Shown here piece after piece: positions 15,261 through 49,850 of a stretch of 64,000 nt of DNA (position 1 is its first letter; each line of letters begins with the position of its first letter). The translations under genes were made by a program, and so were the position numbers. The notes under the pieces are model-generated. The model made no database searches. It was not told the origin of the DNA and was given only the letters and a program-made list of their open reading frames with translations. Source of the stretch: Hemiscyllium ocellatum (lineage: Eukaryota); NCBI RefSeq assembly GCF_020745735.1, contig NW_026867526.1, positions 248,001 to 312,000 of the forward strand, given 5' to 3'.

Positions 15261-15719
15261 GGTTAATTAGAGTTAAGCTAAAGCACAAGACAGTTCATTA
15301 GATTTATAGTGTAAATTGTTAGTTTGCATTTTGTTAATATCGTATTAATTGTGATAAGCCATAGCCTATCTACACCTAAGTGCCAAAGCTGCCTTTGGTC
15401 AACATCCCTTCATAACAAAATGTTACCTATCACAGAATGAAAATCAACTGATCTAACATTCACTGCCATTTGTGAAAAAAGTTCTAAATATCTCCCACCT
15501 TGTATGTAGAAGTGCTTTTGAACATCTCTCCTGAGTGGTCAGGCCCTAATTCTCAGACTATGTACCCTAATTCTAGAATCCCCAATCAGTAGAAATAGTT
15601 TATCTTAATTTACTCTGTTGTTTCCTGGTAATATCATAATGACCTTAATCAGATCATCCTTTAACCTTCTAAATTCTCAAGAAAGTTTCAAGTAATAATC
15701 CGCTCAATGAAGCCCAGTT

Positions 15720-18871: not shown

Positions 18872-18899
18872 ATGTACATGTCTATCATGCCATCTAATA

Positions 18900-19020
18900 T
18901 GCATTGAAGCTGTCACCTAGATAGGAGACAAAAATGTCTGCAAATCAACTTCCCAGCTCAGCGATCATACCCACAACCATGGCAACAGGCACCTGAGCTA
19001 CAAATCTTTACACAAACCTT
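18900..19020 (+). mobile_element. Penelope-like element 3' tail remnant
   Basis: cccagctcagcga...acctgagctacaaatctt, related to the antisense tail at 31390-31480. Confidence 0.55.
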
Positions 19021-19510: not shown

Positions 19511-19619
19511 GAGGGAATTTCCTTTAATACACTCGGATGGTAACGAGCAAATCCCGGGGATCTCCACTCTTTAAATCCATTACCTCCCTTATTACCAGAG
19601 TTCTCTTGATAACTGACCG

Positions 19620-21950: not shown

Positions 21951-24900
21951 TAGGGGCCAGGCTGACCCTTATTTTACTTTGTTTGGTCCCACCAATGTAG
22001 AGAGTACCACATCCTCTCCAAATGGCCAAGAGCAAACTGTACCCAGCCACTCCGAATATCTGGCAAGGCTGTCAAAACCTGTTAATTCTCCCCATCCTCC
22101 CAGTGTCGAAGAAACCTCTGAGGGGAAAGATGGACACAGCAGCTGTCACAACATTGCTGGCAGACGATGATGAATGTCTGGTCAGATGCTCCAGGGGCAA
22201 GAGGCAGTCACAGTCTGGTATGCTCCAGCACTATCCAAGCCAGAGTTTGAGGAACCCGACCTGTTGAGAAAATATCCCAGGAGATGCCACAGGAAGAAGA
22301 ATGGGCATAAATCCTAGGACTTCGAGGTGGAGGAAAGTAATTATTGGAGCGAGGTCAGCCAGCTGAACATCATTGAACAGAATTTCCCAAGTTGGGGCTA
22401 TGAATCTGGTCCAATCAGGGAGTCCTGACTGCTCATTCAAGCAGCTGACTCTGTGAAAACTAGGTCATTATCAACTACTGTCCACATATAGGTTTTGGTC
22501 TGCATACTGCTAAGCAATACCCAAGCCTTGGATGAAATTGACAAGACTGTCTGGAAAGAGTAGAATATCCTAGGGGAGCTCCCAGATGCCACAACCATGA
22601 ATATTTTCAAAGAAATGGAACATGTCTGACTGTGGTAACTACTGGGGAATATCCCTTACGTCAATCATTGCCAAAATCCTTCTCAACTGTCTCCTCCCTG
22701 TGGTTCCTCTGTTCCCATGTCAGCATCTGAGCTTTGATCTTTCCTTGGGTTAGTGAATTGTTACGGAAAATGACCGAGCCTCCATTTTGGCAGCTTAGGT
22801 ATGCTATTCAGAAAGGGATAGCCTTACAAATAGTGACGTTGCCAAGAAGTAGCCTTTTGGCAAGTGAAAACACAGATTTCATTTTTTAAAGTCTTGGCAA
22901 AGAATAATCCCCAGTGAGATGTGTCGCTGACATGTGCAGTGTTCCGATACTGTGCCAGTGTCTGGCTCACCGATGGCTCAACAGGGACGACTGTCCGATT
23001 AGTGTACGTTTCCCAGACTTCAGCTGATGCCAAATGAAGATGCATCGCATAGAGAAACAAAGTTTGGCAGGAATCTTTGTGTGAGAACGTTCAGTCAATA
23101 CCTTTCTATGCATACGTTTGAAACAGTAATGGACCCAAACCCTTGTTAAGATGAGCTGAAGAGGACAGGGCCATCCCACTTCTAGGTTCTGGTCAAATTC
23201 AGCCGTGAGCTGTTATTAACTGCATACAACTACAAGTTGGAACACCAAGCAGGCGGTCAAGTGGTTAATGCCTGAAGCCAACTCCCAATGATGGATACAC
23301 TGGAAAAGTCTGTTCTGGTTTTAAACTTTCTGCACACCCTTCCAGTCATCTCTGACAATCTCCGATTAGAACAAGGTCCCTTACTGCAGTGTTAGAAACG
23401 AAAAGATCATCATAAGCAGGATTGAATCGTTTGTGGATCTGGTGAGATCAGATGGCCACTGTAAACTGCATACTAATATGGGGAGCAAGGCTGAAAAATG
23501 TGTTGCTTGAAAAGCGCAGCAGGTCAGACAGCATCAAAGGAGCAGGAGAATCGATGTTTCGGGCATAAGCCCTTCTTCAGCTCCAGCAGGGTCGTCCTGT
23601 GATTTCCAAAATTAGGATGTTGATAAAAATTTATGTTTGGCCAGGATTGGAGGCTGTGATAGCCATGTTGGTGGGGCAGTCTCCTGAGTGCCAATAGGGA
23701 CAAGAATTGACTGGCCAGATATAACCTGGATTCAGTTATATTTTGACTATGCCATCGCATCGCCTCGCCTCGCGTCTCTGCACATCGCGTCACGTCACGT
23801 CACGTATTGCATCGCCCCTCACCTCCCCTACCCTCGGCTGAGCCCCCCCAGGATCCCAATGCGGTTTTCGGCCAGAGAGTGATCCATTGAATATGATTTT
23901 CACTGCAGTATATGGCCTTCTGGGATCTTTAAAAAGGCCTTTAACATCATCAATCGGGAAGCATTTCTGGAGCGTTCTTCGTCGCTTTCGTTGCACCATG
24001 ATGTTTGTCACCATCCTTCACCTGCTCCACAATGACGTATAATTCATCAAAATGACAAACAGCTTCAACACCTACCCATTCGCCCTCTGAACCGGTGTCG
24101 AGCAGGGTATGTCATCACCGCAACACTTCTGAATCTACCTCGCTGCACAACTTCACTTCCGACAAGCTGCCCATGTTTGATCCAAGGGGGCTTTAGTTGT
24201 GGTTCTGAACCATTGCTGTCCCAGATGCTCTTAGTGGGGATCAGTGTGAGTGATATCTTATTTTTAGTTGAAATGTGCAGGTGTACTTTCTCTGAATTTT
24301 AAACCGTTATTCTTCATTTCCCAGGAGTTTTCAATTTACGACAGAGCAGAGATTTATTTAATTGAAAAGAACGTTTAATTATTTAGTTTTTTATTTGGTT
24401 GAAAAGAACAAATGCTGGAGATCACAGCAGGTCAGAGAACATCCATGAGAGAGAGTAGCTAGTATTTCAAGACCAAATGACTCCTCATTAGAGCTGTTCA
24501 TGTGTTGTTTAATTTGCTTGAGTATATTTTTATTTTGGCCCCCTGTAGCTCCTGCCCACGAGTGGTTGATGGGGCAGGGGAAGCCAATTTTTGCTTGTTA
24601 AACAAAAAAGGCACTATTGCTCTGTGGAAAGCCAGAAAGAAATAAACAAAGTGAAAGCAGTTTAATTTCTGTTTTGAATGAGTACACCATTTTCCCTGGT
24701 GATGGGTCTGTTCCAGGAATGTCTGATGCAGGCAGTATCAGGGGATCTTGGTTTTATTTTTCATTTGCATCTTTGGTTTTAAAAGAGTGGGGGGTTGTTT
24801 TGCAGACTGGAGGCCTGTGACAAATGCAGGGATTGGTGCTGGGTGTAATGTCATTTTTCATTTCAGTAATGGATTGGAATGTGAATATGAATGTGAATGT

Positions 24901-25651
24901 TCAACTGCATCAGGAAATTCAATGCCGGCCACAAGACCCCTCTTTGCGCGTGAGGCAGTTTACTACATTGGACAAAATGTGCTGTTTAAACCATTGGAAT
25001 GGCATGCATGGGGAAGGGGCATGGTCGAAATCAAAGGAGAAAGTGAGGACTGCATTCAGAAATGATCAGCATTGCAAATGATCTCATCGCCCAGAAGTAA
25101 TCTTTAGGGAAGTGAAAAAGCAGGTATTGTAGATGGTGTTGGCACACAATAGTCCCCAGTGAGCTGTAGTGCTGTCATGTGATGCCTCCCAATACAGTTT
25201 GAGGTGACTGCTGGCTCACTGATGTCTTGGCAGACATGGTATATGTTTCTCAAACTTTGACTAATGTCAAATGAAGACATGTCCAGATAGAGAAGGAAGG
25301 TTTGGTGGTAATCCTTTGTGTGAGAAAGTTCCACCAATACCTTTGAGTACATCAATTTGAAATATAAATGGACCACAAACTACTGCCAGGGAGACCTGAT
25401 GATGTCAGGGCCGTCACACCTCAAGCTTCAGGTCAGATTCAGTGGGCTGTCATGCTGAGTGCATAAACCCTCAGAAACCTGAGTGAGCAATCATGTGTTA
25501 AATGCAGTTGTGTGAAGCCTACTCCCTCTGGTGGGTACACGATGGTGGGCGCCAGCAGTGAAAAGGTCTGTTCTGTTTTTAAACATTGCGGGCATGCTTC
25601 CCATCATCTCTGACCATCTCAGACTGTGGGTACAAAAAGATTCCTTCCTGG
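21950..25651 (+). repeat. Composite array unit(s): Gypsy pol + RTE-like RT + antisense PLE-type tail + CR1 pieces
   Basis: Carries the same marker segments in the same order as the units at 41975-64000. Confidence 0.8.
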
Positions 25652-26110
25652 TGTTGGGATGTATATCTAATACGCCTCGGGAGGGTAGACCTGTAGTTGC
25701 TGCTTGGGAAATCGGGGGGCGCTGCGGAGCTGCTGTTTGGACTGTTTACCGAAACTGCCTGTGCAGCTGGACTACCAAGGTCAGACCAATACAATGGCAG
25801 CCTTTACTCGGAGACCTTGTTTACAAGACAGACCATCTCGTGGATACCTGCCAAGGCCGAGGCCTGTTCACAGGAGGCCTTTGTCTGTGAGAGATCATGT
25901 GTGTGAGTGATTACGTAGCGTTAGCTTAGCGAACAATATATCAAGCAGGGGCTTTTGGAAAGATTTCAGAAGGCGCTTTCTCCAGTGAGCAGTAAACATC
26001 TCACTGTATTTTTGTGTACGTCTCTCTCTCAGTAAAAGCTTATATTTTGAATCAGATCCAGTGTTTCTCTCCTTCAAACGATCACCGGGGACGGTAGCTC
26101 CGTCCTAACA
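25652..26110 (+). mobile_element. LTR A (459 bp), 5' LTR of an ERV-like element
   Basis: Termini tgttggga...tcctaaca. Interrupts a Gypsy sequence that is continuous at 48872-48880. R-U5 homologous to 35630-35770. Followed by a PBS. Confidence 0.93.
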
Positions 26111-26114
26111 GTTT

Positions 26115-26133
26115 TGGTGACCCCGAACGTGTG
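26115..26133 (+). promoter_or_regulatory. Primer-binding site, tRNA-Trp type
   Basis: tggtgaccccgaacgtg, 4 nt after LTR A. Matches the tRNA-Trp PBS TGGTGACCCCGACGTGAT known from ASLV, with a 1-nt insertion. Confidence 0.85.
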
Positions 26134-26387
26134 AAGGGAGTGGAGACACGCCTATTGGCAGGGATTGAGAGGTCGCTGAATGGCCGGCCACTTCTAATCA
26201 GGCTCGGAGGCGCCTTTTTCAAAAAAGATTTCCAGTAGGGATTTGAATACGCTAAATTCTTATTTGCTCGGTGTCTCACAACTCTTTGTCAACCAAAATT
26301 GTGGGCTTGGCAGCCCGAGAGAGAGTCAGACCGTTTATTTATGAAGAAAAGTCCCCTAGGTGAAGGGTTATCCCGGCCGCGCGGTTT

Positions 26388-26618
26388 CTGAAAGTCCTAG
26401 GGGTGGTGAGTATTATTGTTTTAAAAAAAAAAGTCCTCTAGGTGGGCACTGAAAGTCCTAGAGGTGGGTAGTGTTTTAAAAAAAAGTCCTCTAGGTGTGC
26501 ACTGCAAGTCCTAGAGGTGGGTAGTGTTTAAAAAAAAAGTCCTCTAGGTGGGCACTGAAATTCCTAGAGGTGGTTAGTGTTTTAAAGAGAAAAATCCTCT
26601 TTGTGGGCGCTGAAAGTA
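26388..26618 (+). repeat. Leader tandem repeat, about 53-61 bp x4
   Basis: Unit starts ctgaaagtcctag at 26388, 26449, 26502, 26555 and 26610. Confidence 0.9.
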
Positions 26619-26638
26619 TTGTTATGGGTAAAGCTTAG

Positions 26639-26765
26639 GCTTTACCCCGCGCAGAATGAAGTCGGGTTAAGCGTATGCTTCCCCCCCGCGCAGTACGAAG
26701 TCGGGTTAAGCGTATGCTTCCCCTCGCGCAGAACGAAGTCAGGTTAAGCGTAGGCTTCCCCCTTG
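26639..26765 (+). repeat. Leader tandem repeat, 38-39 bp x3 plus a partial unit, CpG-rich
   Basis: Unit gcttccccccgcgcagaacgaagtcgggttaagcgtat starting at 26639, 26677, 26716 and 26754. Confidence 0.92.
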
Positions 26766-26774
26766 CACTAAGGA

Positions 26775-26783
26775 CCGGTGAGT
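26775..26783 (+). promoter_or_regulatory. Putative major splice donor of the ERV leader
   Basis: ccg|gtgagt with GT at 26778-26779, in the position expected for a retroviral leader donor. Confidence 0.6.
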
Positions 26784-28669
26784 AAAAAATATACTTCCCT
26801 TGACCGGAGAACGAGCGCTGATCGGGACTGGTTTTGGTCGGGAGTCGAGGTGGTGCATTCGTGCGCCCGACACCCAGGAGTTCCGTGGTGGAGCGTGAGA
26901 CAAAAGACAGCGGACCGGGGACAGTGACAGACACAGATTTATTGACAAGAGCGACTGTGTGGTGTGTGTATGTGTGTACAAGTATTGTGGTGTTAGTAAA
27001 AGTGTGTGGGAGAAGAAGAGTTTGTGTGTGGAAGTCTGTCAGAGAAGTTTGCATTGTTGCCCTAGAGAGAGAGAGAGAGAGAGTGTGAATGCTGCATGCG
27101 CCGGCAGTGTGTTTGTGTGAAAGAGAGAGACTGGCTGAAGGCATTGTCAGCTAACAAGCAGTTTAACACTTTGTGCTTTGGCTTGACTTCATCTGTTTGG
27201 TAATAGTTTTATGTTTAAAACTTGTTGTCTGTCATTTGATTCAGTGTGCTATTTTTGATTATAATTTCATGAATGCTTAACGTGATTTTCTTTCAGGATA
27301 GAATTTTAATAGATATTGAGAGAGGAAGAAAAGATTAGGTGGTATCTGATAAGGTTGATCCCCATTTTTTTTTGGGAGAAATTTTTATGTTTAAATGAAA
27401 GTATTAAAGGGTGGACAGCAGGAAAATTTATTTTTGACAACAGCTTACAGTGGGAAACGACGGAGATAGTGACAAAGAAAGATAGAAACAGAAACAAAGG
27501 GGGGGGGGCAGGCTTTCAAATCAACTATGCAAGTGAAAGAGTAATGAGGTGTTATGAAAGAAGACCCCAGAGGGCAGGAGAGGCAGAAAAGAGTTTTTTG
27601 GATCTCGGCAAAGAATATAAAAAAAAATGTAAGGAATACTAGATTTATTGTACTCCGAGGAGTACAGGTGGGGATTGCAAGGAATCTCTCATTTCCATGA
27701 CCCTAAGATTATGCATTTTTTTGAAAAAGCCTGATGAGATGCGGTTTATGCACTTTGTATAAACCTTCTTGTAAATACAGATATACATAATGTACATATT
27801 TAGAATAACAAATGATGTAAATACCAAGTAAAACTTATTACTATTTGTATTGGCAATTTTTTTGTGAATTTGAATATGTTCTAGTAGAAAAAGAGTTTTT
27901 CCATCCAACTCTTCTAATGTTCTTATAAATATAGAAGAGACAGCAGGTAATTGTGCTCAAAATTTATCACACCAGGTAACACGTCGGAAAACAAATTAAT
28001 ATTAAAAAGAAATATCTTGTTTAGAGTGCATCTTATTGGATAGGGTCCAAAAAGCGTGAAATATCTGTGTTGTAGGAATAAAGACAATAATGCAACTAAA
28101 TTAATATGGAATTTAGTAATCTGTGATGAAATGCAAACTGATTTTAATAATTAATGTTCTAAATTACTAATTGTTGATTCATTTTCAAAATAAAATATTA
28201 AAGCTGCAGTCACTGTAGATAAGGATTATAAGCGAAGCAATTTCTATTCCAGAGATTATAGTATTTGTATTGTGGGATTTGGCTATAGCTCAGACACTCT
28301 ATTTTGCGTGAGTAAAGTTTTTAAAACGTTACAAAAAAAACCTTTGAACTTTGGTATAATTCCTGAACCTATAAAGTTCCCTTTTATGTCCTCCCTGTGT
28401 CAGTTCATAGCAAGTACAACTTCCAAATAAATTGTGAATATGTTTTAATGTATAAATACTGCATGGTCTGGGCAGTCACTGACTTCCAATTTTTTTCTCT
28501 CTGGTTTCCATTGCCACCGGGGTGAAATTGCTTGTGGTTTATAATGATTTTTTTCAAGGGGTTTCTGTTTGCACAGCTGGCGGTTTGATTGCTTTTCTCA
28601 AGTGGGTGTGAATTTCTGTGATCTTTTTTTCAATGGACGGCGGCAGCCAGGTCTGTGTGTGTGTTTTTT

Positions 28670-28760
28670 TTCTATTGGACGAGGAACTCCCATTCAGCAA
28701 TGGAGGGCTCTGATTGGCTAGAGAACTCCCATTGAGTTTAATTCACAGTTGTATAAGCGA
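28670..28760 (+). promoter_or_regulatory. CCAAT-CCAAT-TATA promoter-like module
   Basis: ATTGG at 28674 and 28713, each followed by gaactcccatt (39-bp period); TATAA at 28752-28756. Confidence 0.5.
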
Positions 28761-29107
28761 CATTGAGATATTTTTAAAATTAAAACAATATAGAGCCAAA
28801 ATATGTAGTGCCCTGGACCCAGTATTATGTTGACAGTGACTTCATGGTCAAGTTGCAGACAGAGTTAATTTTTCTTTTAACCAAAATAACAAACTGAAGC
28901 TTCAGAACAAACAGAGATAGATAAAGCAAAAGGGAAGGTGAAGGAGACAAAGGGAAGAGAAACCAAGAGAGAAGGATAGATAGAAGGATTGCGAGGAATA
29001 AGGGTTAGGGGTAAGGGGATTCACAAAGGACTGTGCAAACAGAGAGAGAGCGCGTGTATAGCTAGCAAAACATTTAACCCTTTGTGATTTGGTTTGAATG
29101 CACATTG

Positions 29108-29325
29108 GTTTGTTGGTGATTGAATGAGTAAGTTTTGTTTCTAGAGCTTGAATTCCAGGACTGCTGTTTAAAGTGATTTCGTTTTATGTTAACTTAACAT
29201 GATTTAGATGCATCTGTTTGCTTGGTGATTGAATTCTTGTTTTTTGTTTCTAGAGCTCGAGTTCCAGGACTGCTGTTTAAAGTGATTTCTTTTTATGTGA
29301 GCTTAACATGATTTTTTAAGGCTAA
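29108..29325 (+). repeat. About 110-bp tandem duplication containing an intron-like unit
   Basis: Two copies of ...ttgtttctagagct.ga.ttccaggactgctgtttaaagtgatttc.ttttatgt.a.cttaacatgattt. Confidence 0.9.
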
Positions 29326-31389
29326 TAACTTCTGTTCTTTTATGAGTCATGACTCCCTAACTACTTTTCTTACTAACCTCTTTTATTTTTACATAAAAGC
29401 AATATATGAAGGACAGTCGAAGTTTCGTTCGACAGTGGGTAATTGTTAAAAACGAATGTTTCCATGGTTATTATCTGTGACCTTGGATTCGCCCATTGTG
29501 CATGCGTTAGAAGTTTTTAACTTGAATTGACAAATTGTTGTAAGACAGCTCTGATTATTTTTACGACCTAAAGTATTTTAATTGAGTAATGATTGACCAG
29601 CAGTACTTAAGAAAACTAATTTTGGATCTAAAATGGGGAACTAAAACTGAGTGATCACAATGGTCTTCAACATTGGTAACTGTATGCATTTACATTTTGA
29701 AAATTGAATACTGGATGAATGGACGTAAATATAAATATGCTTACAAGTTAGTTACAGGCATTAAAGTAAGACAAGCATGAATTGGTAAATTGGTGTTTAA
29801 GGATATGGGAATCTAAGGACATTGCAATATTTCTTAGAAGAAAGGAAAATGGAAGAACGTAATGATTTGTCCCCTTTGGAAAGTACCGATAGAAAACGAG
29901 GAGATAAGGTGAGTGTGTGTTCCCCTCACTAGTGGGGACATATAAGAGGAAATAACGGTCTTGGTTGAGAATTTGATAGGATTTTCAGAACAGATTAATC
30001 TATGATAAAAACCCAGTATGTATATGTGGGCTGGTTTAATGTCTAATTTAAATATACTATTTACTAAGGAAAAAAGGAAACTTATATGGGGATACTGGAG
30101 CGCTCGTCTGTTGAAGGCATGGTGTTACGGAAAGTGAAACCTGCTGCTGTTCTTTCCTCCCTGCCTCTCCAGATGGTTTTCTACTTCAATGCATTTTGTT
30201 ATTTTTTCTATTTTCTCGATCTTTTGTTTGTGTTAACAAGACATTTGCACCATCCGGAGTTGTTCGCAGTTTATCAAAATAATCAAACAGCATTTTTTTT
30301 TCTCTCTCAATTTAATATTTAGTTTTGTGGGTGAAGTTTAGTAGGTCTCTATGTCTGTCTTTTCTAAGACCTGCAGGCAAGAATTTTCTACATGATCCAT
30401 CGTGCTTCTGCTTTAGCCTCAGTAATCAATGATTTTGAGATGCCAATATTCTGCCATCGGTTTTGCTTAGATTCTGAGCTGAGCTTATTGCGTGGAATGG
30501 GTGTTGAAACTCTATCTATTCAAGCTTCGCACTCTACAGTGAATGAAATCATTATGGTATCAATTTTGCTAAATGGTTTGTTTGCACAAGGTTGATTCGA
30601 AATTTAGTTCTAGAGGGAAATGGGATTTTCTGAAGAGGAATAAATTTTTAGTCTTAAGGATGCTTGGATGATAGAGTAATATTATATTTTTGTATTATAA
30701 AGTCTGGATTTAAATTTCTGGTTGTTTTATAGTACTTTTCACAGCTATTCACTAACAGGAGGGATTCAGTCCTGGTCACGCAGATTTTGTGCCAATGCCT
30801 AATACAACTGTGGTCAAACACCTAATTTTAATTCCACAATTCCAAACCTGGTTATGACGGTTCTAGGAAAGATGAGATAAGAAATCAGATAGATTTTTCC
30901 ATATTGGTAATATAACACTATGTACTAAAATGTTGCATTTATATTCCTACAGACTTCAAGTCAAGCACTTTCTCTTCATTTTTTCATTTATGCAGATCTG
31001 ATGGTGGCTAAAACCTTTTTAATACTTTGAACAGGTCTTCGTTATTGAACATCTGGACACATACCTAGTAGGCTGTACACAGACAGCTATGATTAACTTT
31101 AGCCTTTTCATTCACTAAATTTTAGTTGTGGTTAAGAGTAAGAGACTTATTCCCCTTGTTCACTATTAAGTACTGGATATGAATTCAGTACAAGATTTCA
31201 AAAAACTGGAAGATGACTGTACCCCTGTTGAAGGAGGAGCTTATGGGTCTGTAATTAATTTGTGAATGGATAATGGGTATGGGTTACAGTACAAATACCA
31301 GACGCTAATCTCTTCTGAGATTCAACAACAGATCACAGGTGAATTTTGCCTAGTTTAGTAAATTAGGACTATCTTTCAGAAAGGAAGTG

Positions 31390-31800
31390 TATTTGCAGTT
31401 TTTTGAGAAGATATGTAGCTCAGCTTCTAAGTTTACTCACTGAGCTGAAAGGTTTGTTCTTGAACATTTTGTCATCACGCATTGTTAGGAGGGGCACAGA
31501 AAGTGTTTGTAAAGAGAGAAAGGGCGAGTGACAGGAGCAGAACGCGTAAATGATGGTAGCTGCGGTTGATGAGGTAATTAGGGGAAGAATGCAGCCAAAA
31601 GTGAGCAACCGGAGCAGCGAGTGATAGCATGTAGGGCAGGGAAGAAAGGGAGTAGGGAGAGACATGGAGGAGCATTTGATAGAGAGTTTGAGCGACAGGG
31701 GCAGAGACGAAGGTCTCCACAGGCAGGATGCCATTATTGTGGAAAGATAGGGCATTTTAGAGGAACAGGAGAGGATCGGTTAAACTAATCTACCTCATAG
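31390..31800 (-). mobile_element. Penelope-like 3' end, antisense
   Basis: Reverse complement reads ...gatgacaaaatgttcaagaacaaacctttcagctcagtgagtaaactt...ctgagctacatatcttctcaaaa, related to 18900-19020. Confidence 0.6.
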
Positions 31801-31899
31801 CGGGCAAAGAAGGAATTGCAGCGGCTGTCAGCCTGGCCCCAGACCAAGCTGAGTTTTGAAATCAACAGAAGAGGTGGGAAGTATAAAATGGAAGCTGTG

Positions 31900-33650
31900 G
31901 AAATCGTACAAATGCATTTATGGATTGAATTTAAATTTGTCTTACTAAATTAGATCTAGCAATGTTCTATCAGTGCCACAGTTAAACTTTCAGATATGTT
32001 TCATGTCAATAAATGCCAATAATTTTCTATGAGTGATTCTGTGGTATTTGAGCAATTATTATAGCTATGTTTAAAGTCAATTTTAACATTGGAGGTCAGG
32101 TTTTGGGAAACTTTATAGGCTTAGACATTGAGCAGGATAAGTTGGAATTGACTTTGAGACAACAGCCTTAAGCTTGTTTGCATTCTGATAAATTCTGCTG
32201 GGTCATCACAGAAAGGTGGTTTTGTATCTGAAAGAAGAAAGTTGTTAGCTTGTTTGACCAGTTCAGTTGGGTGTGCAGCCAGTTTTGATGTGTTGGAACT
32301 AGGTACTATAATGAAATAATTGAGGATGTCTAAGGACCTGTACTGCACTGTATTTTTCGATGTTCTATGTTCTAATATTCAGAGATGTTTGAAGTAGGAA
32401 CAGAATCATGATAATGCACACGCTAATTGTATAGACGACAAATGAGAAAAGGTTTTGGGGCGCATCCTGGACTAGTTGTTAATCAGCAGTTTGCATGTCT
32501 GACCAGGAACGTTTCCAGTTTTGGTTCTAGGTGGTTAAACAGAAAAGTGAATGACTTGAAGGTTGAAGGTTCAACTCTTAGCACATGGTAATAATGACCA
32601 GATTAGGTTCAGATCAAAAAAAAATGGAGTCTGAAAGATAAAGTCATCGGGATGTTTATTTTAGTGACAACATTTAAAAGAAACAGTTTGAATAGTGAGA
32701 TAACCGTGGAGAATGTTTTACAACCAGTTGAACAGAGAGCAAGGTAATATAGTCTGACTGACGAAAATACATTTAGATTTGAGCTTTCAAGAATAAATTG
32801 ACTAAAGCAAAAGCAACAGAAGGAAAATAAAGGAATGAGAAAGTGGCATTTGGAATGATAAAATCAAGAATATAATGTAGTATAAAAGCATAGTCAAAAC
32901 AGATGAGGTAATCTTAAGGTGAAAGTGGTCATTTTTTTTACTTAAACATCGCCAGTACTTTTATTATCATTAAATATTTTCATTGTGCTGTTGCAGAGGA
33001 AAGTGTAATTATGATCTGTTAAAGCTCTTAAAAAGGATAGTGATGAGAACACTTGTGGAATAATCCATGGAAAAACTGTATTTGAAAGGAAAGTTATGTT
33101 CAGGAGTTAGTCCATTTAAAAATGAGATGAGGATTGGAGGTCACTGTTTCAAAGGCCACAGATTTGAACATTTTTTCGTCCTTATGGAAAATGGGGAACT
33201 TTTGGAACTGTTCTGCAAAATGTGGTGTTAAATATAGATTCTGGATCAGCAGGGAGGGAAATCTTCTGTGCTGTACTTTTCTATTTGGGTCCTAAGATAC
33301 GTGGGATTACACAGTAAATGGATCCTCCATCGCCTGAATAGCTGAGCATTTGGGAACCATTATCAGGATTGGAGACAGTCAGCATAGATTTATGAAAGGG
33401 AAGTCAAGCTTGACAAATTTACTGGAATGTTTTGAGGATGTAAATAATGAGGTTACCGAAAGGGAGCCAGTGGAGGTGTTTATTGGGAATTTCTGAGGAC
33501 TTTTAACAAAGTCTCATTAAGGGATTAGTGCGTAAAATTAAAGGATGTGGGAATAGATGTAGTTTATTGAGGTGGATATAAAATTGGTTGGCAAGTGGAA
33601 AGATTAGGAAGAAACAGGGTTATTTACTGAATGGGAGGCTGGGAAAGAGG
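31900..33650 (+). mobile_element. Old, degraded CR1 fragments inside the LTR element
   Basis: CR1 tail at about 32330-32375 and an RT fragment at 33340-33650 (agtcagcatagatttatgaaagggaagtcaagcttgacaaatttactggaa), heavily diverged. Confidence 0.75.
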
Positions 33651-33654
33651 GACA

Positions 33655-34077
33655 GTATCAAACAACACTGGCCCGGATGGCAAGCTCACTAAAACCTTGA
33701 TAAAACTCCGAGCCTTAGCCACTGAGCTGAAGCAACAGCCGGGGGTAAAAAAAAACCCAGTGATAGATTGGCTGAATAGCACATTCGGTAGATGGGGAAC
33801 TGTGCTGGGACAGCTGGCCCTTGGTTTATGCATTTCTGTTGCTATCTTTATTACCTGTGATTGTTGTTGTATACCATGTATCAGGACGCTTGTGACACGT
33901 ACGATCGACCATGCCCTGACAGGAAAGGATAACCCCCCACCCGCATACCAGGCAGCGGGGCTGGAGGAGCCTGTGATGGGGGCACCCCATGGAAAGATTA
34001 CGAGATCGGTATCAGAGGGAATGGAGGAAATATGCCTGAGAGGGAAGCGTGGGACAACTTATGATTTTACTTTATAA
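33655..34077 (+). pseudogene. env: ERV envelope TM C-terminal remnant (epsilon-like, fish/amphibian type)
   Basis: NNTGPDGKLTKTLIKLRALATELK...DWLNSTFGRWGTVLGQLALGLCISVAIFITCDCCCIPCIRTLVTRTIDHAL; 5' end fused to a CR1 fragment. Confidence 0.92.
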
Positions 34078-35272
34078 CTGTATCTCTCATTTCTAATCCT
34101 TCCCATATTAGGGCCTCAGAATGTGAGGGCTGAGGTGCAGAGACCCCCTAGTTGTGTATTTTTTTTCTCTCTCTTTCCCGTTCAAATTGACAACAGGTAA
34201 ATTTGTGCTTTTATGCTGCAGTTAGAGATTGTGAAGTGCTATATGCCTCGAGACTCAAGAGACTATTGTTCACTCAAGAGATTTCCTAGCCATCATCTGG
34301 TATTCCTAAATGGCTTCGATTGGTCTCGACGGCCACTGTTCACAATAATAAGCCAGTTACCACTGCCCGTGTCCGTACTTGACAGCTGTAAAATGGATGT
34401 GGGTTTTTATTGGTCAAGTGAAGGTGACTGGTTAGCCAATGACGGGTAAGATTCCTCGAGTGAGGGACAACCTAAGACAGGCACAGTCGTGCATTGACCT
34501 TCAGAATAATGGCCTGTGGTCATGTGGTTTTAGCAGATGCCTGGCTTTTGTATCCGTGTCGGGAATCTGGTCAAGTTTCTGGCTTGCAAAGCAGCTTGAT
34601 ATAAGGAAAATCGTGGACCCAACAGTTTGACATTGTATTCACTGTATTTTTGACGAAGGAAAATGCCAGTTTTGTGTCATTTTCCAGAACCGACTTAACA
34701 ACAACCCTTTAGGAAGGAAGGAGAGCTCATTGAATCCTATTGCAAAAAGATTTGACACTATGTCAGTAGTTTGAAATTTTATTTTAAGGTGTCATGGTAT
34801 AATACGACTGACTTTACTGGGAGGTTGTACAATTGGGTGTTCTTTGAACAGCAGAGCTTCATTCTGCAGGCGTCCTAACTCATCCACTTTGTGTTTTCGT
34901 CTGGTTCTCTTCGCTTTTGTTATCATACTCAGCAATCGTTTTGTTGGTTTTGAGGTGGCTTTTTGTATATGTTTACAACTTTTAAGTGCTTACATCTGTT
35001 ATGTATTATTTCACTGCTTCTTGTGCCTTAACGATTGTATGCGAACTGGAGAGGCGCATAGAGTAGAGATTTTGCGGCGCGGAATGCTTTGTGTAATTGT
35101 ATGCTGCTTAGGGATTCCTATCCCCTATAACTATGTCTCCCTAGAGTCAGACAAGCCAGGTTTAGCTAAATGGTCGGTCTTGCAAAGGAGCGACAGAGGG
35201 ACGCTCACCGACCGTCCGGGTCCTGACTGCTGCGCGCGAACTGCTGTATTTTGTGTGGCCTCTTTCGAGGCC

Positions 35273-35283
35273 AAGGGAGGGAG
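35273..35283 (+). promoter_or_regulatory. Polypurine tract
   Basis: aagggagggag immediately before the TG of LTR B. Confidence 0.85.
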
Positions 35284-35770
35284 TGTTAGGAAGCATTATT
35301 AAGGGTAGGTTGTGTTCAGAAACTTTATTGTTAGGTAGTGCTCACGTAAGGTAGTACTAGCAAGTCTGGAAACTGTTAGCTTCACTAGACAACAGTAAGC
35401 CATTATGTTACACTAAGAACAGACTGAAACACTGATGGCATAATGGGGCCACAGGGAGGGTGAACAGATAACAGGACATTGAAACCGTGTTAGATTGCAC
35501 GTAGCTCATACTGAGGTAACTGAATCTTATCTCTTCTGGAACCAATACTATTAGAGAATACCGCTTCTTACCAAATAAGGATGTAGCACTGGGATGTGAG
35601 GGGCTAAAAGCTAGACAAAGAGAACAATAGATCAGAACGCGCCTTCTCCAGTGAAGAGTAAATATCTCACTGTATGTTCTGTGTACGTCTCTCTCATTAA
35701 ACCAGCTTATATTTTGAATCAGATCCAGTGTCTCTCTCCTTCAAACGAACACGGGACGGTAGCCCTAACA
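35284..35770 (+). mobile_element. LTR B (487 bp), 3' LTR
   Basis: Termini tgttagga...ccctaaca; preceded by a PPT; attaaa poly(A)-like signal near 35696; R-U5 about 85% like LTR A, U3 not alignable. Confidence 0.93.
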
Positions 35771-37809
35771 CCTGGTAATATCATAAAGACCTTAATCAGA
35801 TCATCCTTTAACCTTCTAAATTCTCAAGAAAATTTCAAGTAATAATCCACTCAATGAAGCGCAGTTTGGGTTTCACTAGGGCCACATAGGTCCCTGACCT
35901 CATTACAACCCTGGTTCAAACATGGAGGTGAAGCCAAAGTGATAGCCCTTGACATCAAGACCATGTTCAATTGTGTGTGGCATCAAGGAGCTGTAGGAAA
36001 ACTGGAATACGAGGGGTGGGTGGCAAATTCTCTGCTGGGTAAAGTCATACCAGGCACCCAGGATACACTGCAACAACATGAACTGCACAAATTCACCAAA
36101 GATCCTTAGTCTGCACTTATAATCGAGGGAACATCATTAATGGTGCAGCTGAAGATGGTTGGGCTTCAGACACTGCACTGAGGAACTCCTGAAGACACGT
36201 CCTGGAGCTGAGGTGACTGGCCTCCAACAATCACAATCAAATTCATATGTGCCTAACATGATTCATCATGTAAAACCACTTCCATCCAGAATGACAAGGG
36301 CAGCAGATTCATGGGAACACCAACACCAGCAAGTTCCCCTCCAAACGACTCGCCATCCAGGATTGGAAAAATATTACTATTTGTTCAGTCACTGGATCAA
36401 AACCCTGGAATTTCTTCCCTAAGTGCATGTGGATTCACCAACAGCTTATGGACCTTTTATTCATTTGTAGTATGTGGGCATCTCTGGCTGGCCAGCATTT
36501 TATGCCTGTCCCTAGTTGTCGTTGAGGAGGTGGTGGTGAGTTGCCTTCTTGAACTGCTGTAGTTCACCTGTTGTAGGTTGACCTACACTGACATGAGGAA
36601 GGGAATTCCATGATTTTAACCCACTGACAATGAAGAAAAGGCAATGTATTTCCAAGTCAGACTGTTAAGTGGACGTTAAGAAGGGAACTTGAAGGTGATG
36701 GTGCTGCTCTTCTCCTTTGAGATAGAAGTGGTCATGATTTTAGAAGGTGATGTCTGAGGATCTCTGGTGAATTTCTGCAGTGCATCTTGTTGACAGTACA
36801 CACTACTGCTATTGAGCATAAGTGGCAGAGGGAGTGGATGTAAAGCCAATGAAGCAGGCTGTTCGTCATGGATGATGTCAAGCTTTTTCAGCATTGTGGG
36901 AGCTGCACTCATCCAGGCAAGTTGCCCTCCAACCGACTCTGGACTTGTGCCATATTGATAATAATCAGGCTTTGGGAGTCACAACCTGAGTTACTTGCCA
37001 CACGATTCCTAATCTCTGATCTGCTCCGATAGCCACTGTGTTTGTGTGACAAGTCCAGTTGAGTTCCTGGTCAATGGTAACGCCTAGGATGTTGATAGTT
37101 GGGGATTTGGTGATGATAATACAATTGAATACCAGGGGATGATGGTCAGATTGTCTTTATTGGTAATGGTTATAGCCCTGCATTTGTTTAGTGTAAATAT
37201 TACTTGTCACTTGTCAGCCTGATTCTGGAAATTGTCCAGATCTTGTTGCATTTGAACGTGGACTATTCAGTACCTGAGGAGTCGCCAATTCCAAACACTC
37301 TACAATCATCAGTGACCATCCCCACTTCTGACCTTATGATGGATGAACCAGTAACATCAACTGCAGCAATTCAAGAAGGCATACTACCACCGTCTTCACA
37401 AAGGCATCTCGGGTGGGATAATAAGTGCTCACCAGTCAACAAAGCTTACATCCCATGAGTGAATAAACTACAAGTCTCATTCTTGTAAACATATTTTGTA
37501 CTCACTACAAGCCAATGTATCTTTCCTAAGAGCTGATGCCCAAATCTGTTCTCAGTACTCCAGGTAAGGTTCGAACAGTTTTGAACACTCACAGCTATTC
37601 ATGGCATTTTAAAGATCTATTCACCTAAAACCAAAGTCTCTTTGGACTTCCACTATACTTAACTTCATACCATCTTGAAAACATCATGTTCTATCCTCCG
37701 TCAGTCCAAAATTGATACCTCACACTCACACTGAACTCTCTCTATCACAGTTTTGCCCATCCACCTAGTCTATGAATATCCCCTTGTAATTTTATGCCAT
37801 CATGTACAC

Positions 37810-38938
37810 CAGTGTTTCTCAACGGGGGTGGAAGTGCCTCCTGAGGGGCGTTTCCCTTCCTTCGGTCGGCGTTGAAGTCAAAGAGGACGGCAAGGGGTCA
37901 CTGAACGACTTTGTAGAGAGCTTACCAATCACTTGGAAGACTGCCATGTCCTTGAAGGACATTGCTGTGTGCAGATGGACAGTCGCATAACACGAGTCTG
38001 TTATTTTCCCTGCACCCATGGAGGAGTGCGCTCTGATTGGTTCCTGAGCTATTATTGATAGTCTTTTCCATGAATAGCAAACCATTTGAACTCGTTCGCA
38101 GTTGGCACTGATTCTACAGCTGAGATCAATATCACCTAACTCGTGTCGCTTCTAAGATGGCATTCTGCTCGGGTGGCAGAATGAATGCACATTACAGCTA
38201 ATTAGCCAATCAAATTTTGCCACTTGTCTGAGCGTCTTAAAATAATTGTGATAAGGTAATACCCATGATTCCATTAGGGTATTCGAGCAACAGTGTAAAA
38301 ATGGCCTCATTGAGTAAGAAAAAGTGGAGTATAGCATGCAGTATAGTATGGACTATTTGTGATATGGCTTTATTCAATCTCTATCTAATAAGCAATTACC
38401 ACTGTGCTTGCTCTGTCTGTGAACAAAGTTTTTCCTACGAGGCCATGAAGCCTTCCTATCTTATTAAACATTTGGAAAAGAAATAGTGACAAAAAGGACG
38501 AAGATTTGGCATATTTTCAAGCATTAAGAATAAATTCAATCAACAACCAACGATTTCCATTGCTTTTTCAAATATAGGAGCCACAAATGTGGATGGCCTT
38601 GTGGCATCATACAACATAGCCAAGCTAATTGCAAAATGTGGTAAACCTCATTCCGTGGGTGAATTGTTGGTGCTTCCAGCTATTGCCAAAATATTATCAA
38701 CTGTGCTACATCAGGAACTATCAGTGACTATCAAGCATATTCTTCTTGCAGCTTCCGTGAGAAGGTGCATCGATGAAATGGCCTCAAATCTTGAGGATAA
38801 ATTATGTTCCGTTTTGATATTGAAAGAAACTGATTGATGAAAGTACTATATGTGAACTCAAGCTTTACTTTTGGGAGGCGTTGCATGATTTCAAGGATAA
38901 GAAGGGGGCTTTGAATAGGGAAAGGTTGAGAAACACTG
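37810..38938 (+). mobile_element. hAT (Charlie/Buster-like) element, duplicate copy
   Basis: Same TIRs and atgtacac/atgtacat TSD as 17743-18871. Confidence 0.93.
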
Positions 38939-39689
38939 ATGTACATGTCTATATTGCCGTCTAATATGCATTGAAGCGGTCACCTAGATAGGAGACAAAA
39001 ATGACTGCAAATCAACTTGCCAGCTCAGCGATCATACCCACAACCATGGCAACAGGCACCTGAGCTACAAATCTTTACACAAACCTTGAATACCTAACAT
39101 TGTGTCATCAGCAAATTTGGATATATGGCCATTGTGTCACTGTCCGATTAATCAATAAATAATGTGAATAACTGAAGCCAAACACAGATCCCAACAGGAC
39201 ACCACTGGTCACATCCTGCCAAATCTGAGTTCCTATCCATTATCCATCCATGTCAGTAATTTGCCTTCAATTTCATAGGTTTCTGACTAAGACTATTATG
39301 TGGGATTCATCAAATGCCTCCTGGTAGTCCATGTAAGCACTGCCTCTGTTGACATTGCCATGTCCGACCTCAGTCATCTCGTCAAACAATTCAGAAGTTT
39401 GTCAGGCATGACCTACGTGTCATGACGCTCATTGATTAACTTAAAAATGTATAAGATATTCAGTGACCCCATCCCTGATGATAAACTCCAACACTTAGAC
39501 TAACTGCTCAGTGTGTCCCTGGTTTTCCTCGGAGTGGTGTTATTTTCCGATCGAGAATACTCTGCAATGATTATAATGAGGGAATTTCCTTTAACACACT
39601 CGGATGGTAACGAGCAAATCCCGGGGATCTCCACTCTTTAAATCCATTACCTCCCTTATTACCAGAGTTCTCCTGATAACTGACCGACT

Positions 39690-39960
39690 TAATCCTAAAC
39701 CCAGCGCCGCTCAACAACCGCTGCCATTGCCGGCTCTCGGCAAGGAACGGCAGGCGGGGGAAGGCATTTACTGCGCATGTTCCCTCCCAGGCCACCACCT
39801 ACTGCGCATGCTCTGGCCAAGAGCGGGAAGGTTAAACGGTTTAACGGAAAGTTCTGGAACGTGGTGAGTGACGTCATCAGGGCTGGGTGTGGTCGCGAGG
39901 GAAACGTGTCTGCTCCAGTCAGTGAGATGTCAGGGTGAGCTCCTGAGGAGGGGGCAAGGG
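39690..39960. promoter_or_regulatory. CpG-rich promoter / first-exon-like region (copy 2)
   Basis: Both TGCGCATG motifs, the CRE (39869-39876) and the gtgagt donor are retained. Confidence 0.65.
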
Positions 39961-40394
39961 GGAGGCTGGTTTCCACTCCAACCAGCACAATATTGTGTAG
40001 TCGGTGGGGTGTGACGGCTCTGAGGAAGATGTTGAGTTGGGTTCAGATCAGATGAGGGTTGTGAAGGAGTCTGGATGGGGTGGGGGGTGTGAGTTGGAAT
40101 GGGGGAGTGGGATGGGAATGTTGCTCTGGAGACCAGAGATAAAGTGGATTTCGCGATTACCAAACAGTTGGAGTACGTTTTTCAACTCGGAACTTTTTGT
40201 TGTGTAATTATTAAGCTTGAGTAAGTTAGAATCCTCTGAAAGTTAAAGTTTCCAGTTGCACAGAGATTACCCTGACAGAATTTTCAATTTTTCAGGAAAT
40301 TCCCTTGGCTTCAGCCACATCTCCAAAAATTCCATAGACCCCACAGTGCAATTATAATTTCTACTGCTTCAGTGACTAGCGAGAGACTTATATA

Positions 40395-41975
40395 AAACAA
40401 ACCTGTAGATGTTGGAATCTGAAGTAGACAAACAGGAGGCTGGAAGAACACAGCAAACCAGGCAGCATCGGGAGGTGGAGAAGTCAATGTTTCAGGTATA
40501 ACCCTTCTTCAGGACCTGGGTGGGGGTAAGGGGTGCTACAGATAGAGAGGGAGGTAGTTGGGGTCCTAGCTCCCATCCTTGCAGTGTCTTCACCATTCCT
40601 CCAGACCTTCCCCTCAGTAGGGACGAATGTGTCGTCCTCAGTAAAGGCCTCACCTTTATCCCTCGACGGTCCCAGTTTAATGAGTTCGACACAAGCTGCA
40701 ACCTTGAATGTTTCTTCCTCTGCCTCTGTATTGACTTTTTTTAAAACCGAGACACCTGCACATCCACTGGGGACCCTTTTGTCCCGCCTTCGACACACCA
40801 CATCCATGGACACCCCATGCTGGCCTGTTACCTGTGCTTGACCTCTTCATTTCAAACTGCTACCATGACATTGACTGCCTCAACTTGTCCAACCACCTCA
40901 CTCACTCCAACCTCTTTCCCTCTCAACATGCAGTCCTCCACTCCAACCCCAACCTCACCATCAAACCTGCGGGGGGGGTTCATAGTAGTTGTGTGGTGCA
41001 CTGACCTCTACACTACTGAAGCCAGGCACCAGCTTGCAGACTCCGCCTCCGACCGCCCCCTTGCTCACTATCTCACTCTCCATCACCAAGCCATTATCCC
41101 CCGGACCATCCACAATCTCATCATCTCTGGGGATCACCCATCCACAGACTCTAACCTCATTGTCCTTGAACCCTGCACTGCCCGATTCCATCTCCTTCCT
41201 AAGACACTCAAACCTGACTGCACTGGTCGACCCATTGTCTCAACCTGCGCTTGTCCCACTGAACTAATGGACCTCCAAATGGACCCCACAACCAGAAATA
41301 TATTTCCCACCCCACCCCTATCAGCTTTCCAAAAAGACCATTCCTTCTGTGACTCCCTCGTCAGGTCCACATCCCCTACCAGCCTACACCCCACTCCTGG
41401 CACTGTTTCCTGCCACCACAGGAAGTGCAAAACCTATGGCCGCACCACTCCCCTCACCTCCATCCAAGGCTCCAAGGGGTCCTTCCACATCTGTCAAAAA
41501 TTTCACTATACCTCTACCAGCAACATCTACTGCATCCGTTGCACCCGGTGTGGTCTCCTCTACATCAGGGAGACAGGATGTTTTCTTGTGGATCGTTTCA
41601 GAGAACATCTCTGGGACACCTGCATGCACCAACCTCATCGTCCCGCGGCTGTACACTTCAACTCCCTCTCCCACTCCATCAAGGGCATGCAGGTCCTGGG
41701 CCTTCTCCACTGCCAAACCATTACCAGCCGAAACCCGATGGCGAAACGCCTCATATTCTGCCTTGGGACCCTGCAACCATATGGGATAAATGTGAAAGGG
41801 GATTTGGGGCATGGGTGGGCAGGTTATTTGAAATTGGAGAACTGTGTTGAGTTCTCTAGGCTGTAGGCTGCCCAGGTGGAAGATGCGGTGTTCCTCCTGA
41901 TTCACTGCGACAATGGAGGTCGAGAATTAACGTGTAAGGGAGGGAGTGGGAGGCGGAATTGAAATGGATGGTGAG
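40395..41975 (+). mobile_element. Penelope-like element, duplicate copy
   Basis: ORF 40817-41866 (349 aa) spans RT remnants (HLLPKTLKPDCTGRPIVS) and the GIY-YIG domain, but the RT core is missing. Confidence 0.92.
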
Positions 41976-47499: not shown

Positions 47500-49850
47500 G
47501 AGCAACCTAAGGTTTGATAGAACCTCGAAAATGCGGAAGCCGGCCATTTGGCCTGTTGAGTCCACACAACCAGTACCACTTGATGTGCGTGCAAATGTAG
47601 AGGCAGCATTCATGAGGCTGGAAAGTGAAACAATAATAAAACCACTATATTTAACTGTATCCACTGTCATGGTCATCGCCATTGTGGGTCAGTTTGCCTT
47701 TGTGGAGATTTTGATGAAACAGTGATGATACAGTGATCTGTATTTTGCAGCCAGATAAATAACCGATCCATCACATTGAGGACTTAAATGCAAAACTTTA
47801 TTGGCTTTGTACTTCATGAAGCTGGATGTGAACCATGTGAAACTGCCATTGTGATTTGATGAAGATTCCCATAAATATGCTACAATTACCAACATCCGAT
47901 GCTGCTTTTTGTGTTGGGATATCATCAGCCTGTGAAATTGTCCAGTGAACAATGGAGAACATTTCACAAAGTGTATTCCAGGATACGGTCGTCATCAATG
48001 ATGTACGAATAATCGGGAAGAGGATTTTGAGAGATTGTGCACAGCAATTAAAAGGTTCACCAGGGTCTTAGGAGGAAAGATGTGTATTCCAAGACATCCC
48101 AAGTGACCTCCTTGAGCTATAGCATTATCAAGACCAGGTTAAACACATTGGAAAATTAAGTGAGGTCAATCAAGGGTGCCCTGGCATCCAGCAGAGCTTC
48201 GATCTTACCTTGGTTTGGTGAAATATTGTAGATGCTTCTGTAATGGCCTGGCTTCCATCTTGGCAGCTTGGATTTGCTATTCAGAAATGATCAGCATTGC
48301 AAATGATATCATCGCCCAGAAGTAATCTTTAGAGAAGTGAAAAAGCAGGTATTGTAGATGGTGTTGGCACACAATAGTCCCCAGTGAGCTGTAGTGCTGT
48401 CATGTGATACCTCCCAATACAGTTTGAGGTGACTGCTGGCTCACTGATGTCTTGGCAGACATGGTATATGTTTCTCAAACTTTGACTAATGTCAAATGAA
48501 GACATGTCCAGATAGAGAAGGAAGGTTTGGTGGTAATCCTTTGTGTGAGAAAGTTCCACCAATACCTTTGAGTACATCAATTTGAAACATAAATGGACCA
48601 CAAACTACTGCCAGGGAGACCTGATGATGTCAGGGCCGTCACACCTCAAGCTTCAGGTCAGATTCAGTGGGCTGTCATGCTGAGTGCATAAACCCTCAGA
48701 AACCTGAGTGAGCAATCATGTGTTAAATGCAATTGCGTGAAGCCTACTCCCTCTGGTGGATACACGATGGTGGGTGCCAGCAGTGAAAAAGTCTGTTCTG
48801 TTTTTAAACATTGCGGGCATGCTTCCCATCATCTCTGACCATATCAGACTATAGGTACAAAAAGATCCCTTCCTGGTGAATCACAAACAGCTGGTGGTGT
48901 TGGAAATGAAAGGGGCATCACAACCAGAATTAAATCCTTTCTGGACTTGGTGAGACTAGATGTCCATTGAGAATGGCATAGTAATACGGAGAGCAAGTGT
49001 GTTTGTCCCAAGCAAAGGTCACTGTCAGATACTGGCTGAACTCTACCAGGGTCATCCTGTGATTTCCAAAATGAAGGTGTTGACAAGATGTTTTGTCTGG
49101 TGGCCGGGATCAGATGCCGACGCAGCCATGTTTGTGGGTCAATGGCTAGAGTACCAACAAAGACAAAGATTGCCACCAGCAGCTGCACCACATCCATAGA
49201 ACTGGTCAGGTAACACCTGGACTCATTTGCACGTCAACTGTGCCAGTGCTTTCATGGTGGTTATCCATTTAATCATTGTGTACACACAATGTGGTTGGAT
49301 GTGCATGTCGTGCATTTGTCAAATGTGGAGATGACAATTGAAAAGTTGTGAGGATCTTTTACAATACACAGAAACTGGACATGCTGGTCCCAGCTAGCAG
49401 GCCATCATTTAGCAGGAGGGAGTCTTGTGTCTTTCCTAAAGTGGAATGATATTCAGCATGTAAGGACAGCTGCATCTGTTGTCTGATAGTCTGGGGGAAA
49501 GAGCAGTCCAAACATTGAAAGAAAGTTTAAAGGTACAGCCTGCAACTTTAGTCAATACACAAGTGTCCCAATTTGTGATTGATTATAGAACCAGCACTCT
49601 CACAAATACAGGAACAGAAGCATTGGTATTGCAGAGAAGACTCCACTCCAGATTAAATCTGATGTTCTTCCACCTTGTGGAGTGTGTGAAAAGGTGTCAT
49701 GAACACCAATGCTGGCCGGAAGACATTTCTATACGAGAGAGGCAGTTTAGTCCAGGAGACACAATTTGCTGTTACAACAATTGGAATTACCATGTATGCG
49801 TAAGAGGCATGATCGAATGCTGTACACTTCTCAAGGCAGAGAGGTAATCC
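47500..49850 (+). mobile_element. Degraded Gypsy pol (Mag/K02A2.6-like): RT, RNase H, integrase
   Basis: PVPLDVRANVEAAFMRLESETIIKP; ILAELYQGHPVISKMKVLTRCFVWWPG; SDSLGERAVQTLK...YRTS. Confidence 0.9.

Follow-up and report, generated by a model that had tools for sequence, protein, structure and literature searches.

The stretch of the Hemiscyllium ocellatum genome analyzed here (64,000 nucleotides; RefSeq assembly GCF_020745735.1, contig NW_026867526.1, positions 248,001 to 312,000 of the forward strand; henceforth the window, with coordinates counted from its first base) carries a tandem duplication of host DNA with a single long terminal repeat (LTR) element, a relic related to endogenous retroviruses (ERVs), situated precisely at its junction. 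Comparison of the window with itself matches 15624-25653 to 35771-48878 in direct orientation at 96.8-97.8% identity, and self-BLAST together with a MAFFT alignment delimits two direct copies of one host segment, X1 (15624-25651) and X2 (35771-48876). Over 9903 aligned base pairs these copies differ at 223 positions (2.25%), 137 of them by a transition, and are further separated by 12 indel events. The element (25652-35770) exactly fills the interval between them, with the pentamer CCTGG abutting each of its ends: the sequence is ...ttccttCCTGG/TGTTGGGA on the left, where 25652 is the first base of the LTR, and ...CCCTAACA/CCTGGtaatatc on the right, where 35770 is the last base of the element (the slash marks the boundary). 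An earlier, model-made reading of this DNA (the original prediction) had placed an LTR element with CCTGG on both sides exactly on a tandem-duplication junction, which the junction sequences and the self-alignment bear out. It had also called the duplication 13 kb long; the tandem duplication stands, but its unit is 10 kb and only the right copy has the larger size (X1, 10.0 kb; X2, 13.1 kb solely through an additional 3178 bp at 45101-48278).

The sites at the two outer ends of the duplication are uninterrupted. Site 1, where the upstream DNA meets X1, reads gtttCCTGGtaat at 15624-15628, and site 2, where X2 meets the downstream DNA, reads ccttCCTGGtgaat at 48872-48876, both within a shared TTCCTGGT, an identity of 8 bp. 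These sequences confirm the earlier claim that the flanks of the element come from two different ancestral sites, both unoccupied and identical over 8 bp; they also led us to reject CCTGG as element sequence, as both empty sites carry it. Site 2 is crossed without interruption by three paralogous repeat copies (56260-56839, 43141-43755 and 23117-23709), and a match to Integrase_H2C2 (integrase zinc-binding domain; E = 7e-5) lies about 85 bp downstream of it, in agreement with its earlier attribution to a Gypsy element. The corresponding attribution of site 1 to a CR1 element is plausible: the region adjoins CR1-type long interspersed nuclear element (LINE) remnants, but the only paralogue spanning the site (8034-8287) is weak, at 60% identity. 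The pentamer CCTGG occurs 65 times in the 64000 positions of the window (1.0e-3 per position), and TTCCTGGT three times in 40.8 kb of non-redundant host DNA (~7e-5), being locally somewhat commoner than the expected 1 per 65 kb. Within X the octamer is found at 16918 and 37064, which are corresponding positions in the two copies, and additionally at 44740 in X2 only.

The two LTRs of the element are alike at their tips, both starting with TGTTRGG and ending with CCTAACA, and discordant elsewhere. Their U3 regions (~315-350 bp) are unalignable, with an alignment score of -27, where shuffled sequences average -39 with a standard deviation (SD) of 8 (within 1.6 SD). Their R-U5 regions show 9 mismatches in 136 aligned bp along with several indels, where about 3 mismatches would be expected at the 2.25% divergence of X1 and X2 (P = 0.004). 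The differences between the 5′ LTR (LTR A) and the 3′ LTR (LTR B) start at base 5 and persist to ~10 nt from the LTR end. LTRs originating from a single cDNA should be no more diverged than the repeat that flanks them, and these are more so. Because reverse transcription copies both LTRs from one template, LTR A with the left flank and LTR B with the right flank represent two integrated elements, and the junction element, judged from its sequence, appears to be a hybrid of two different elements. In-place decay of one ordinary provirus was rejected, as it would account neither for unrelated U3 regions nor for an R-U5 divergence above that of X1 and X2; whole-LTR gene conversion was likewise rejected as unlikely, as the converted tract would have to stop ~10 nt from the tip, before the non-homologous flank.

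In structural terms the element displays the features of class I ERVs, namely TG...CA tips with short inverted repeats, a primer-binding site and a polypurine tract. A DIRS/Ngaro-type element with split direct repeats was rejected, given that the internal repeat it needs is absent and the primer-binding site and polypurine tract match those of true ERVs. ARAGORN detected no tRNA in the window that could be matched to the primer-binding site, Rfam models gave no match in the element, and a motif scan of the window found no further LTR of the LTR A/LTR B kind. The coding content is sparse: the longest plus-strand open reading frame (ORF) of the element is at most 152 amino acids (aa), and no retroviral Pfam domain is detectable in its 90 ORF pieces (pieces of at least 30 aa, both strands). 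One ORF (33631-34074), searched against a library of 1.8 billion proteins, retrieved 255 homologues (best E = 8e-39), to which it aligns at the C-terminal end of proteins of ~500-700 aa; the two best are Env proteins of the electric ray Narcine bancroftii (69-70% identity). These and other homologues carry the Pfam TLV_coat domain, whereas the window ORF itself has no Pfam match. Since its homologues match C-terminally and carry TLV_coat, we identify this ORF as the tail of a gamma-type transmembrane (TM) subunit. The env remnant is a single truncation product, open over its whole remaining length and lacking the regions equivalent to residues 1-548 of the relatives' Env. Just upstream of it, the CR1-type fragment at 33364-33600 shows 67% DNA identity to positions 16053-16200 of one of the Narcine loci (L002).

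Among the ORFs of five Narcine loci, significant similarity to the element is limited to the TM tail at 33652-34047, and tblastn with the Gag and Pol of these relatives gave no significant match in the element; the faint traces of a Gag zinc knuckle and of the start of Pol near 31.6-31.9 kb keep the order seen in the relatives. A merely decayed pol would be obvious, because the TM remnant is 58-68% identical to its relatives and only about 1% change per lineage has accrued since the duplication. On this comparison gag and pol are absent and not merely decayed, and the element is a non-autonomous, pol-less derivative, a relic of a class-I ERV with a gamma-type env. The absence of pol implies that the parental elements were already pol-less or that the exchange removed it.

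The nearest relatives reached, which form our comparison set, are the five loci L001-L005 of Narcine bancroftii. They share with the window element the LTR termini (TGT(T/A)AGG...CCTAACA), the primer-binding site and the polypurine tract. In all five proviruses the LTR pairs are 99-100% identical over their shared length, and four of the five are bounded by 4-bp target duplications (L001, ATAC; L002, ACAT; L003, CACA; L005, GCAC). None of the eight half-sites of these four cleanly integrated proviruses resembles CCWGG. The window element has no valid 4-bp duplication, its left flank ending in CTGG and its right flank starting with CCTG, as would be expected for a recombinant. Hence the perfect 5-bp target-site duplication of the original prediction is not borne out: the relatives make 4-bp duplications, and the flanks here are CTGG versus CCTG. 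The loci themselves show some irregularities. In L001 one terminal deletion has removed the U5 end of the 5′ LTR, leaving it shorter than its 3′ counterpart; the LTRs of this provirus are otherwise 99% identical and it has a 4-bp duplication. In L004 (near 12878-12890) the 3′ LTR is succeeded by three extra bases identical to the spacer before the primer-binding site, behind which 6 bp of the left flank are repeated; this junction looks like an unprocessed viral end that was joined aberrantly. Two pol-less proviruses with an open env, L002:9071-12327 (3.3 kb) and L005:8088-12123 (4.0 kb), have 100% identical LTRs and clean 4-bp duplications, from which it follows that env-carrying non-autonomous derivatives were mobilized very recently in Narcine bancroftii.

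Table 1. Features of the duplicated region and of the element at its junction (window coordinates)
Feature	Position	Strand	Remarks
Empty site 1 (TTCCTGGT), junction of upstream DNA and X1	15622..15629	+	X homology from 15624; crossed by paralogue 8034-8287 (60% identity)
X1, left copy of duplicated host segment	15624..25651	+	10.0 kb; repeats only, no host gene seen
CCTGG abutting 5′ LTR	25647..25651	+	Host sequence, also found in empty site 2
Apparent hybrid, pol-less class-I-like endogenous retrovirus relic	25652..35770	+	10.1 kb: LTR A, interior, LTR B
5′ LTR (LTR A)	25652..26110	+	459 bp; TGTTGGG...CCTAACA; only the last about 140-145 bp (R-U5) resemble LTR B
Primer-binding-site-like sequence	26115..26131	+	4 nt past 5′ LTR; near-identical to that of Narcine relatives
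Leader tandem repeats	26425..26799	+	Periods of 53 and 38-39 nt
Traces of Gag zinc knuckle and Pol start	31621..31900	+	E 0.016 to 0.7; each alone at chance level
CR1-type LINE fragment, nested just upstream of env remnant	33364..33600	+	E = 0.002-0.003 against Narcine LINE reverse transcriptase ORF
env remnant, C-terminal part of gamma-type TM subunit	33652..34047	+	58-68% aa identity to Narcine Env
Polypurine tract	35273..35283	+	Directly before 3′ LTR; arrangement shared by relatives
3′ LTR (LTR B)	35284..35770	+	487 bp; TGTTAGG...CCTAACA; U3 unrelated to that of LTR A
X2, right copy of duplicated host segment	35771..48876	+	13.1 kb, including 3178 extra bp at 45101-48278
CCTGG abutting 3′ LTR	35771..35775	+	Host sequence, also found in empty site 1
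Empty site 2 (TTCCTGGT), junction of X2 and downstream DNA	48870..48877	+	Inside decayed Gypsy-type pol

As the best explanation of this organization we favor, with a confidence slightly better than even, a Bar-type unequal crossover between an A-type and a B-type element that gave rise to the tandem duplication. The window shows two attributes of such an event, a single element at the X1/X2 junction and outer ends of the duplication without one, and the explanation is supported by the flanks of the element tracing to two sites 10 kb apart that are both empty in the same sequence. An A-type element would have inserted at site 2, the right end of X, on one homologue with CTGG as its target, and, on the other homologue, a B-type element in the same orientation would have targeted CCTG at site 1, the left end of X, the parents being two related but distinct non-autonomous ERV derivatives about 10 kb apart. 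A crossover between the misaligned elements would then join the 5′ part of the A-type element to the 3′ part of the B-type element, yielding an A-X-hybrid-X-B arrangement in which the junction carries one hybrid, the outer sites are empty and a true target duplication is lacking. The exchange might have been homologous, within a shared interior, or else illegitimate, with pol lost in the same event. The flanking CCTGG would represent the end of the target CTGG on one side and the start of the target CCTG on the other, overlapping by chance into one 5-mer. The parents are placed on different homologues because the outer sites are empty, whereas a sister-chromatid exchange would leave three elements; accordingly, two proviruses on one chromosome followed by such an exchange were rejected, as the outer sites would have kept their elements. 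From the 2.25% divergence of the copies, and assuming a rate of ~1e-9 per site per year, the event would date to roughly 10^7 years ago. Of the three models offered by the original prediction, the first combined a crossover between two proviruses with sequence-specific integration at TTCCTGGT; the crossover is retained here, with the LTRs discordant to their tips and no 4-bp duplication present, while the sequence-specific integration is not needed and finds no support in the Narcine half-sites (0/8).

Several points weigh against this crossover. It leaves to chance, and thus unexplained, the shared CCTGG (~1e-3) and the shared octamer TTCCTGGT (~7e-5) of the two targets. It needs two insertions within 10 kb of each other, in the same orientation, on different homologues and simultaneously polymorphic. 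R-U5, the sole part of the parents that can be compared, differs by ~7% plus indels, leaving an identity on the low side for homologous recombination if the interiors were no more similar than this. Finally, no further copy of LTR A or LTR B was found in protein, 24-mer and back-translated TM-ORF searches: protein searches with two element ORFs gave nothing close, an exact R-U5 24-mer had 0 matches in metagenome and viral contigs, and back-translated searches with the TM ORF yielded 0 confirmed loci.

The first of these points raises the question of whether the octamer shared by the two targets is a coincidence at all. We think it unlikely that it is not, in which event it would reflect either an integrase with a preference for CCWGG or a single faulty integration that duplicated a 10-kb target. 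In the former case the crossover would have happened as described above, but between elements whose integrase strongly prefers CCWGG-type sites, such that the shared TTCCTGGT is no accident. The 8-bp identity of two independent targets, set against a local frequency of ~7e-5, argues for this, and the near-identical tips of LTR A and LTR B (TGTTRGG...CCTAACA) suggest that the same integrase served both. Moreover, both joins are onto 5′-CCWGG when read on the joined strand, and with a 4-bp stagger the registers [CCTG]G and C[CTGG] are mirror images on the quasi-palindrome, which makes the scheme self-consistent. On the other hand, the 0/8 count among the Narcine half-sites, with duplications of ATAC, ACAT, CACA and GCAC, speaks against such a preference, as does the weak consensus that, according to PMC2857682, is all that the retroviral integrases studied so far display. 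We therefore regard a CCWGG-preferring integrase as a doubtful proposition; were it real in a shark or ray ERV lineage, it would be unusual for a vertebrate retrovirus.

The latter case, which corresponds to the aberrant integration of the original prediction, has a single event creating both the insertion and the duplication, the viral ends being joined to host DNA 10 kb apart. In a gap-priming variant, the unrepaired 5-nt gap at a fresh insertion in site 2 would break, and its CCTGG tail would prime on the CCTGG of site 1 on the sister chromatid, which would directly account for the identity of the two pentamers. The A-X-element-X-B order is formally equivalent to a 10-kb target duplication, and the precedents invoked for it are real: long duplications are documented for XMRV (273 bp in 1 of 15 integrations; PMC2857682) and beside HML-2 (111-450 bp; PMC5488345). 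The Narcine locus L004 likewise points to aberrant end joining in the lineage. However, one cDNA gives identical LTRs, and this prediction fails here: the differences between LTR A and LTR B reach the tips and far exceed those between X1 and X2, and gene conversion would again have to run to ~10 nt from the LTR end. Further, a 4-bp stagger leaves CTGG or CCTG on both sides instead of CCTGG, so that a rarer 5-bp stagger is required (a 5-bp duplication was seen in 1 of the 15 XMRV integrations; PMC2857682), and a 10-kb target duplication would be more than 20 times the longest reported case. For these reasons we consider a single faulty integration improbable.

We give equally little credence to an assembly chimera, in which each haplotype would have one X, or two copies of X would lie at separate loci, with an A element occupying site 2 of one copy and a B element site 1 of the other, the assembler having switched between them via their similar interiors. 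Switching inside a repeat would generate precisely the structure observed, and the window has no runs of N that would flag a join. Against this, the two copies of X are separated by 2.25% divergence, 12 indels and a 3.2-kb segment, and divergence of this order greatly exceeds the heterozygosity that cartilaginous fishes usually show. An artifact of this kind would still require the same two insertions at CCTGG and so explains nothing extra. The remaining possibility, a microhomology-mediated tandem duplication at TTCCTGGT followed by an ordinary insertion exactly on its junction (the second model of the original prediction), is highly improbable and effectively excluded: although the 8-bp microhomology TTCCTGGT present at both duplication breakpoints is typical of replication-based duplications, the insertion would have had to strike one specific base pair with a 5-bp stagger in a 4-bp lineage, the LTRs should be no more diverged than X1 and X2 but are much more so, with unrelated U3 regions, and what occupies the junction is a 10.1-kb LTR element whose TG...CA tips are exact, in place of the direct fusion or short templated insert produced by fork stalling and template switching or microhomology-mediated break-induced replication (FoSTeS/MMBIR).

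The unequal crossover that we favor has a close counterpart in the Bar duplication of Drosophila, where a single roo element lies between the two copies as a result of unequal crossing-over of elements at two sites (Tsubota et al. 1989, as summarised in PMC13322080). As given in that summary, the likeness extends to the presence of one LTR element (roo/B104) between tandem copies, the absence of any at the outer ends and an exchange between different chromatids (PMC13322080). The two systems differ in scale and context: the Bar duplication, as outlined there, spans 203 kb in an insect and involves a BEL/Pao-type element, whereas the present one measures 10 kb, belongs to a cartilaginous fish and has at its junction a pol-less ERV relic, whose parents visibly belonged to different subfamilies (LTR A, LTR B) and whose targets share 8 bp. 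Long target duplications such as those of XMRV (273 bp; PMC2857682) and HML-2 (111-450 bp; PMC5488345) resemble our case in that a provirus or LTR is flanked by a long direct host repeat; their repeats are 0.1-0.45 kb and the element ends derive from one insertion, in contrast to the 10-kb repeat and two different LTRs seen here.

Hughes and Coffin reportedly described in 2001 recombinant HERV-K proviruses in which the flanks do not match and the two LTRs are discordant. These, together with the HERV15 proviruses of AZFa, are said to combine LTRs of different ancestry with target duplications that are missing or mismatched, a combination read as inter-element recombination that rearranges host DNA, and they resemble the window element in this regard. 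In the AZFa duplications and deletions, however, the flanking HERV15 proviruses reportedly stay at the outer ends, unlike the situation in the window, where the emptiness of the outer sites places the parents on different homologues. Finally, the Narcine class-I ERVs (L001-L005; XP_069755174.1, XP_069794199.1 and relatives) share with the window element the tips, the primer-binding site, the polypurine tract, the gamma-type TM (58-70% aa identity) and the occurrence of pol-less env derivatives. They differ in that their LTR bodies are unrelated to LTR A and LTR B, in their identical LTR pairs and 4-bp duplications, and in that some of them keep gag and pol.

On this reading the locus falls into a known class, that of element-mediated tandem duplications whose junction holds a hybrid element; the element in question is a pol-less class-I ERV derivative, and the host is a cartilaginous fish. 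If produced by the crossover proposed above, the duplication offers a clean vertebrate instance of a textbook mechanism whose best-known case is Drosophila Bar, in a group, the cartilaginous fishes, for which ERV-driven rearrangements have hardly been described, and with both of the 'before' sites preserved in the same sequence. It also illustrates how a recombinant provirus can by chance mimic an intact one, in that the match between its flanks was taken for a 5-bp scar, a reading that fails because of the 4-bp rule of the family and the discordance of the LTRs. The wider interest of the locus hinges on whether the 8-bp identity of the targets exceeds chance.

No host gene is visibly duplicated, and the direct biological consequence of the duplication is probably small. 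The extra X2 segment at 45101-48278 has edges without a clear target duplication, and its repeats recur at about 51-54 kb; the difference represents either a later insertion into X2 or a deletion from X1. The divergence between the copies rises to 3.6-3.8% at 20624-22623 (versus 40.6-42.6 kb in X2), about twice the 1.4-2.3% found elsewhere. This rise coincides with a G+C-rich (about 50%) Penelope-like part and may be a CpG effect. A 349-aa ORF at 40817-41866 is open in X2 only, its X1 counterpart (20476-21841) being in pieces; its best matches, in bamboo shark and whale shark, are 57-63% identical, and as these homologues carry PF26215 and one also GIY-YIG, we assign the ORF to Penelope-like elements. 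Near this ORF, three of the indels separating X1 and X2 are multiples of 3 bp. The interior of the junction element is itself compositionally skewed, with a strong excess of G over C on the plus strand across 26000-34000 (GC skew +0.18 to +0.28) and a low G+C content (35-42%); the window is similarly skewed at 8-14 kb and 60-64 kb, where LINEs are abundant.

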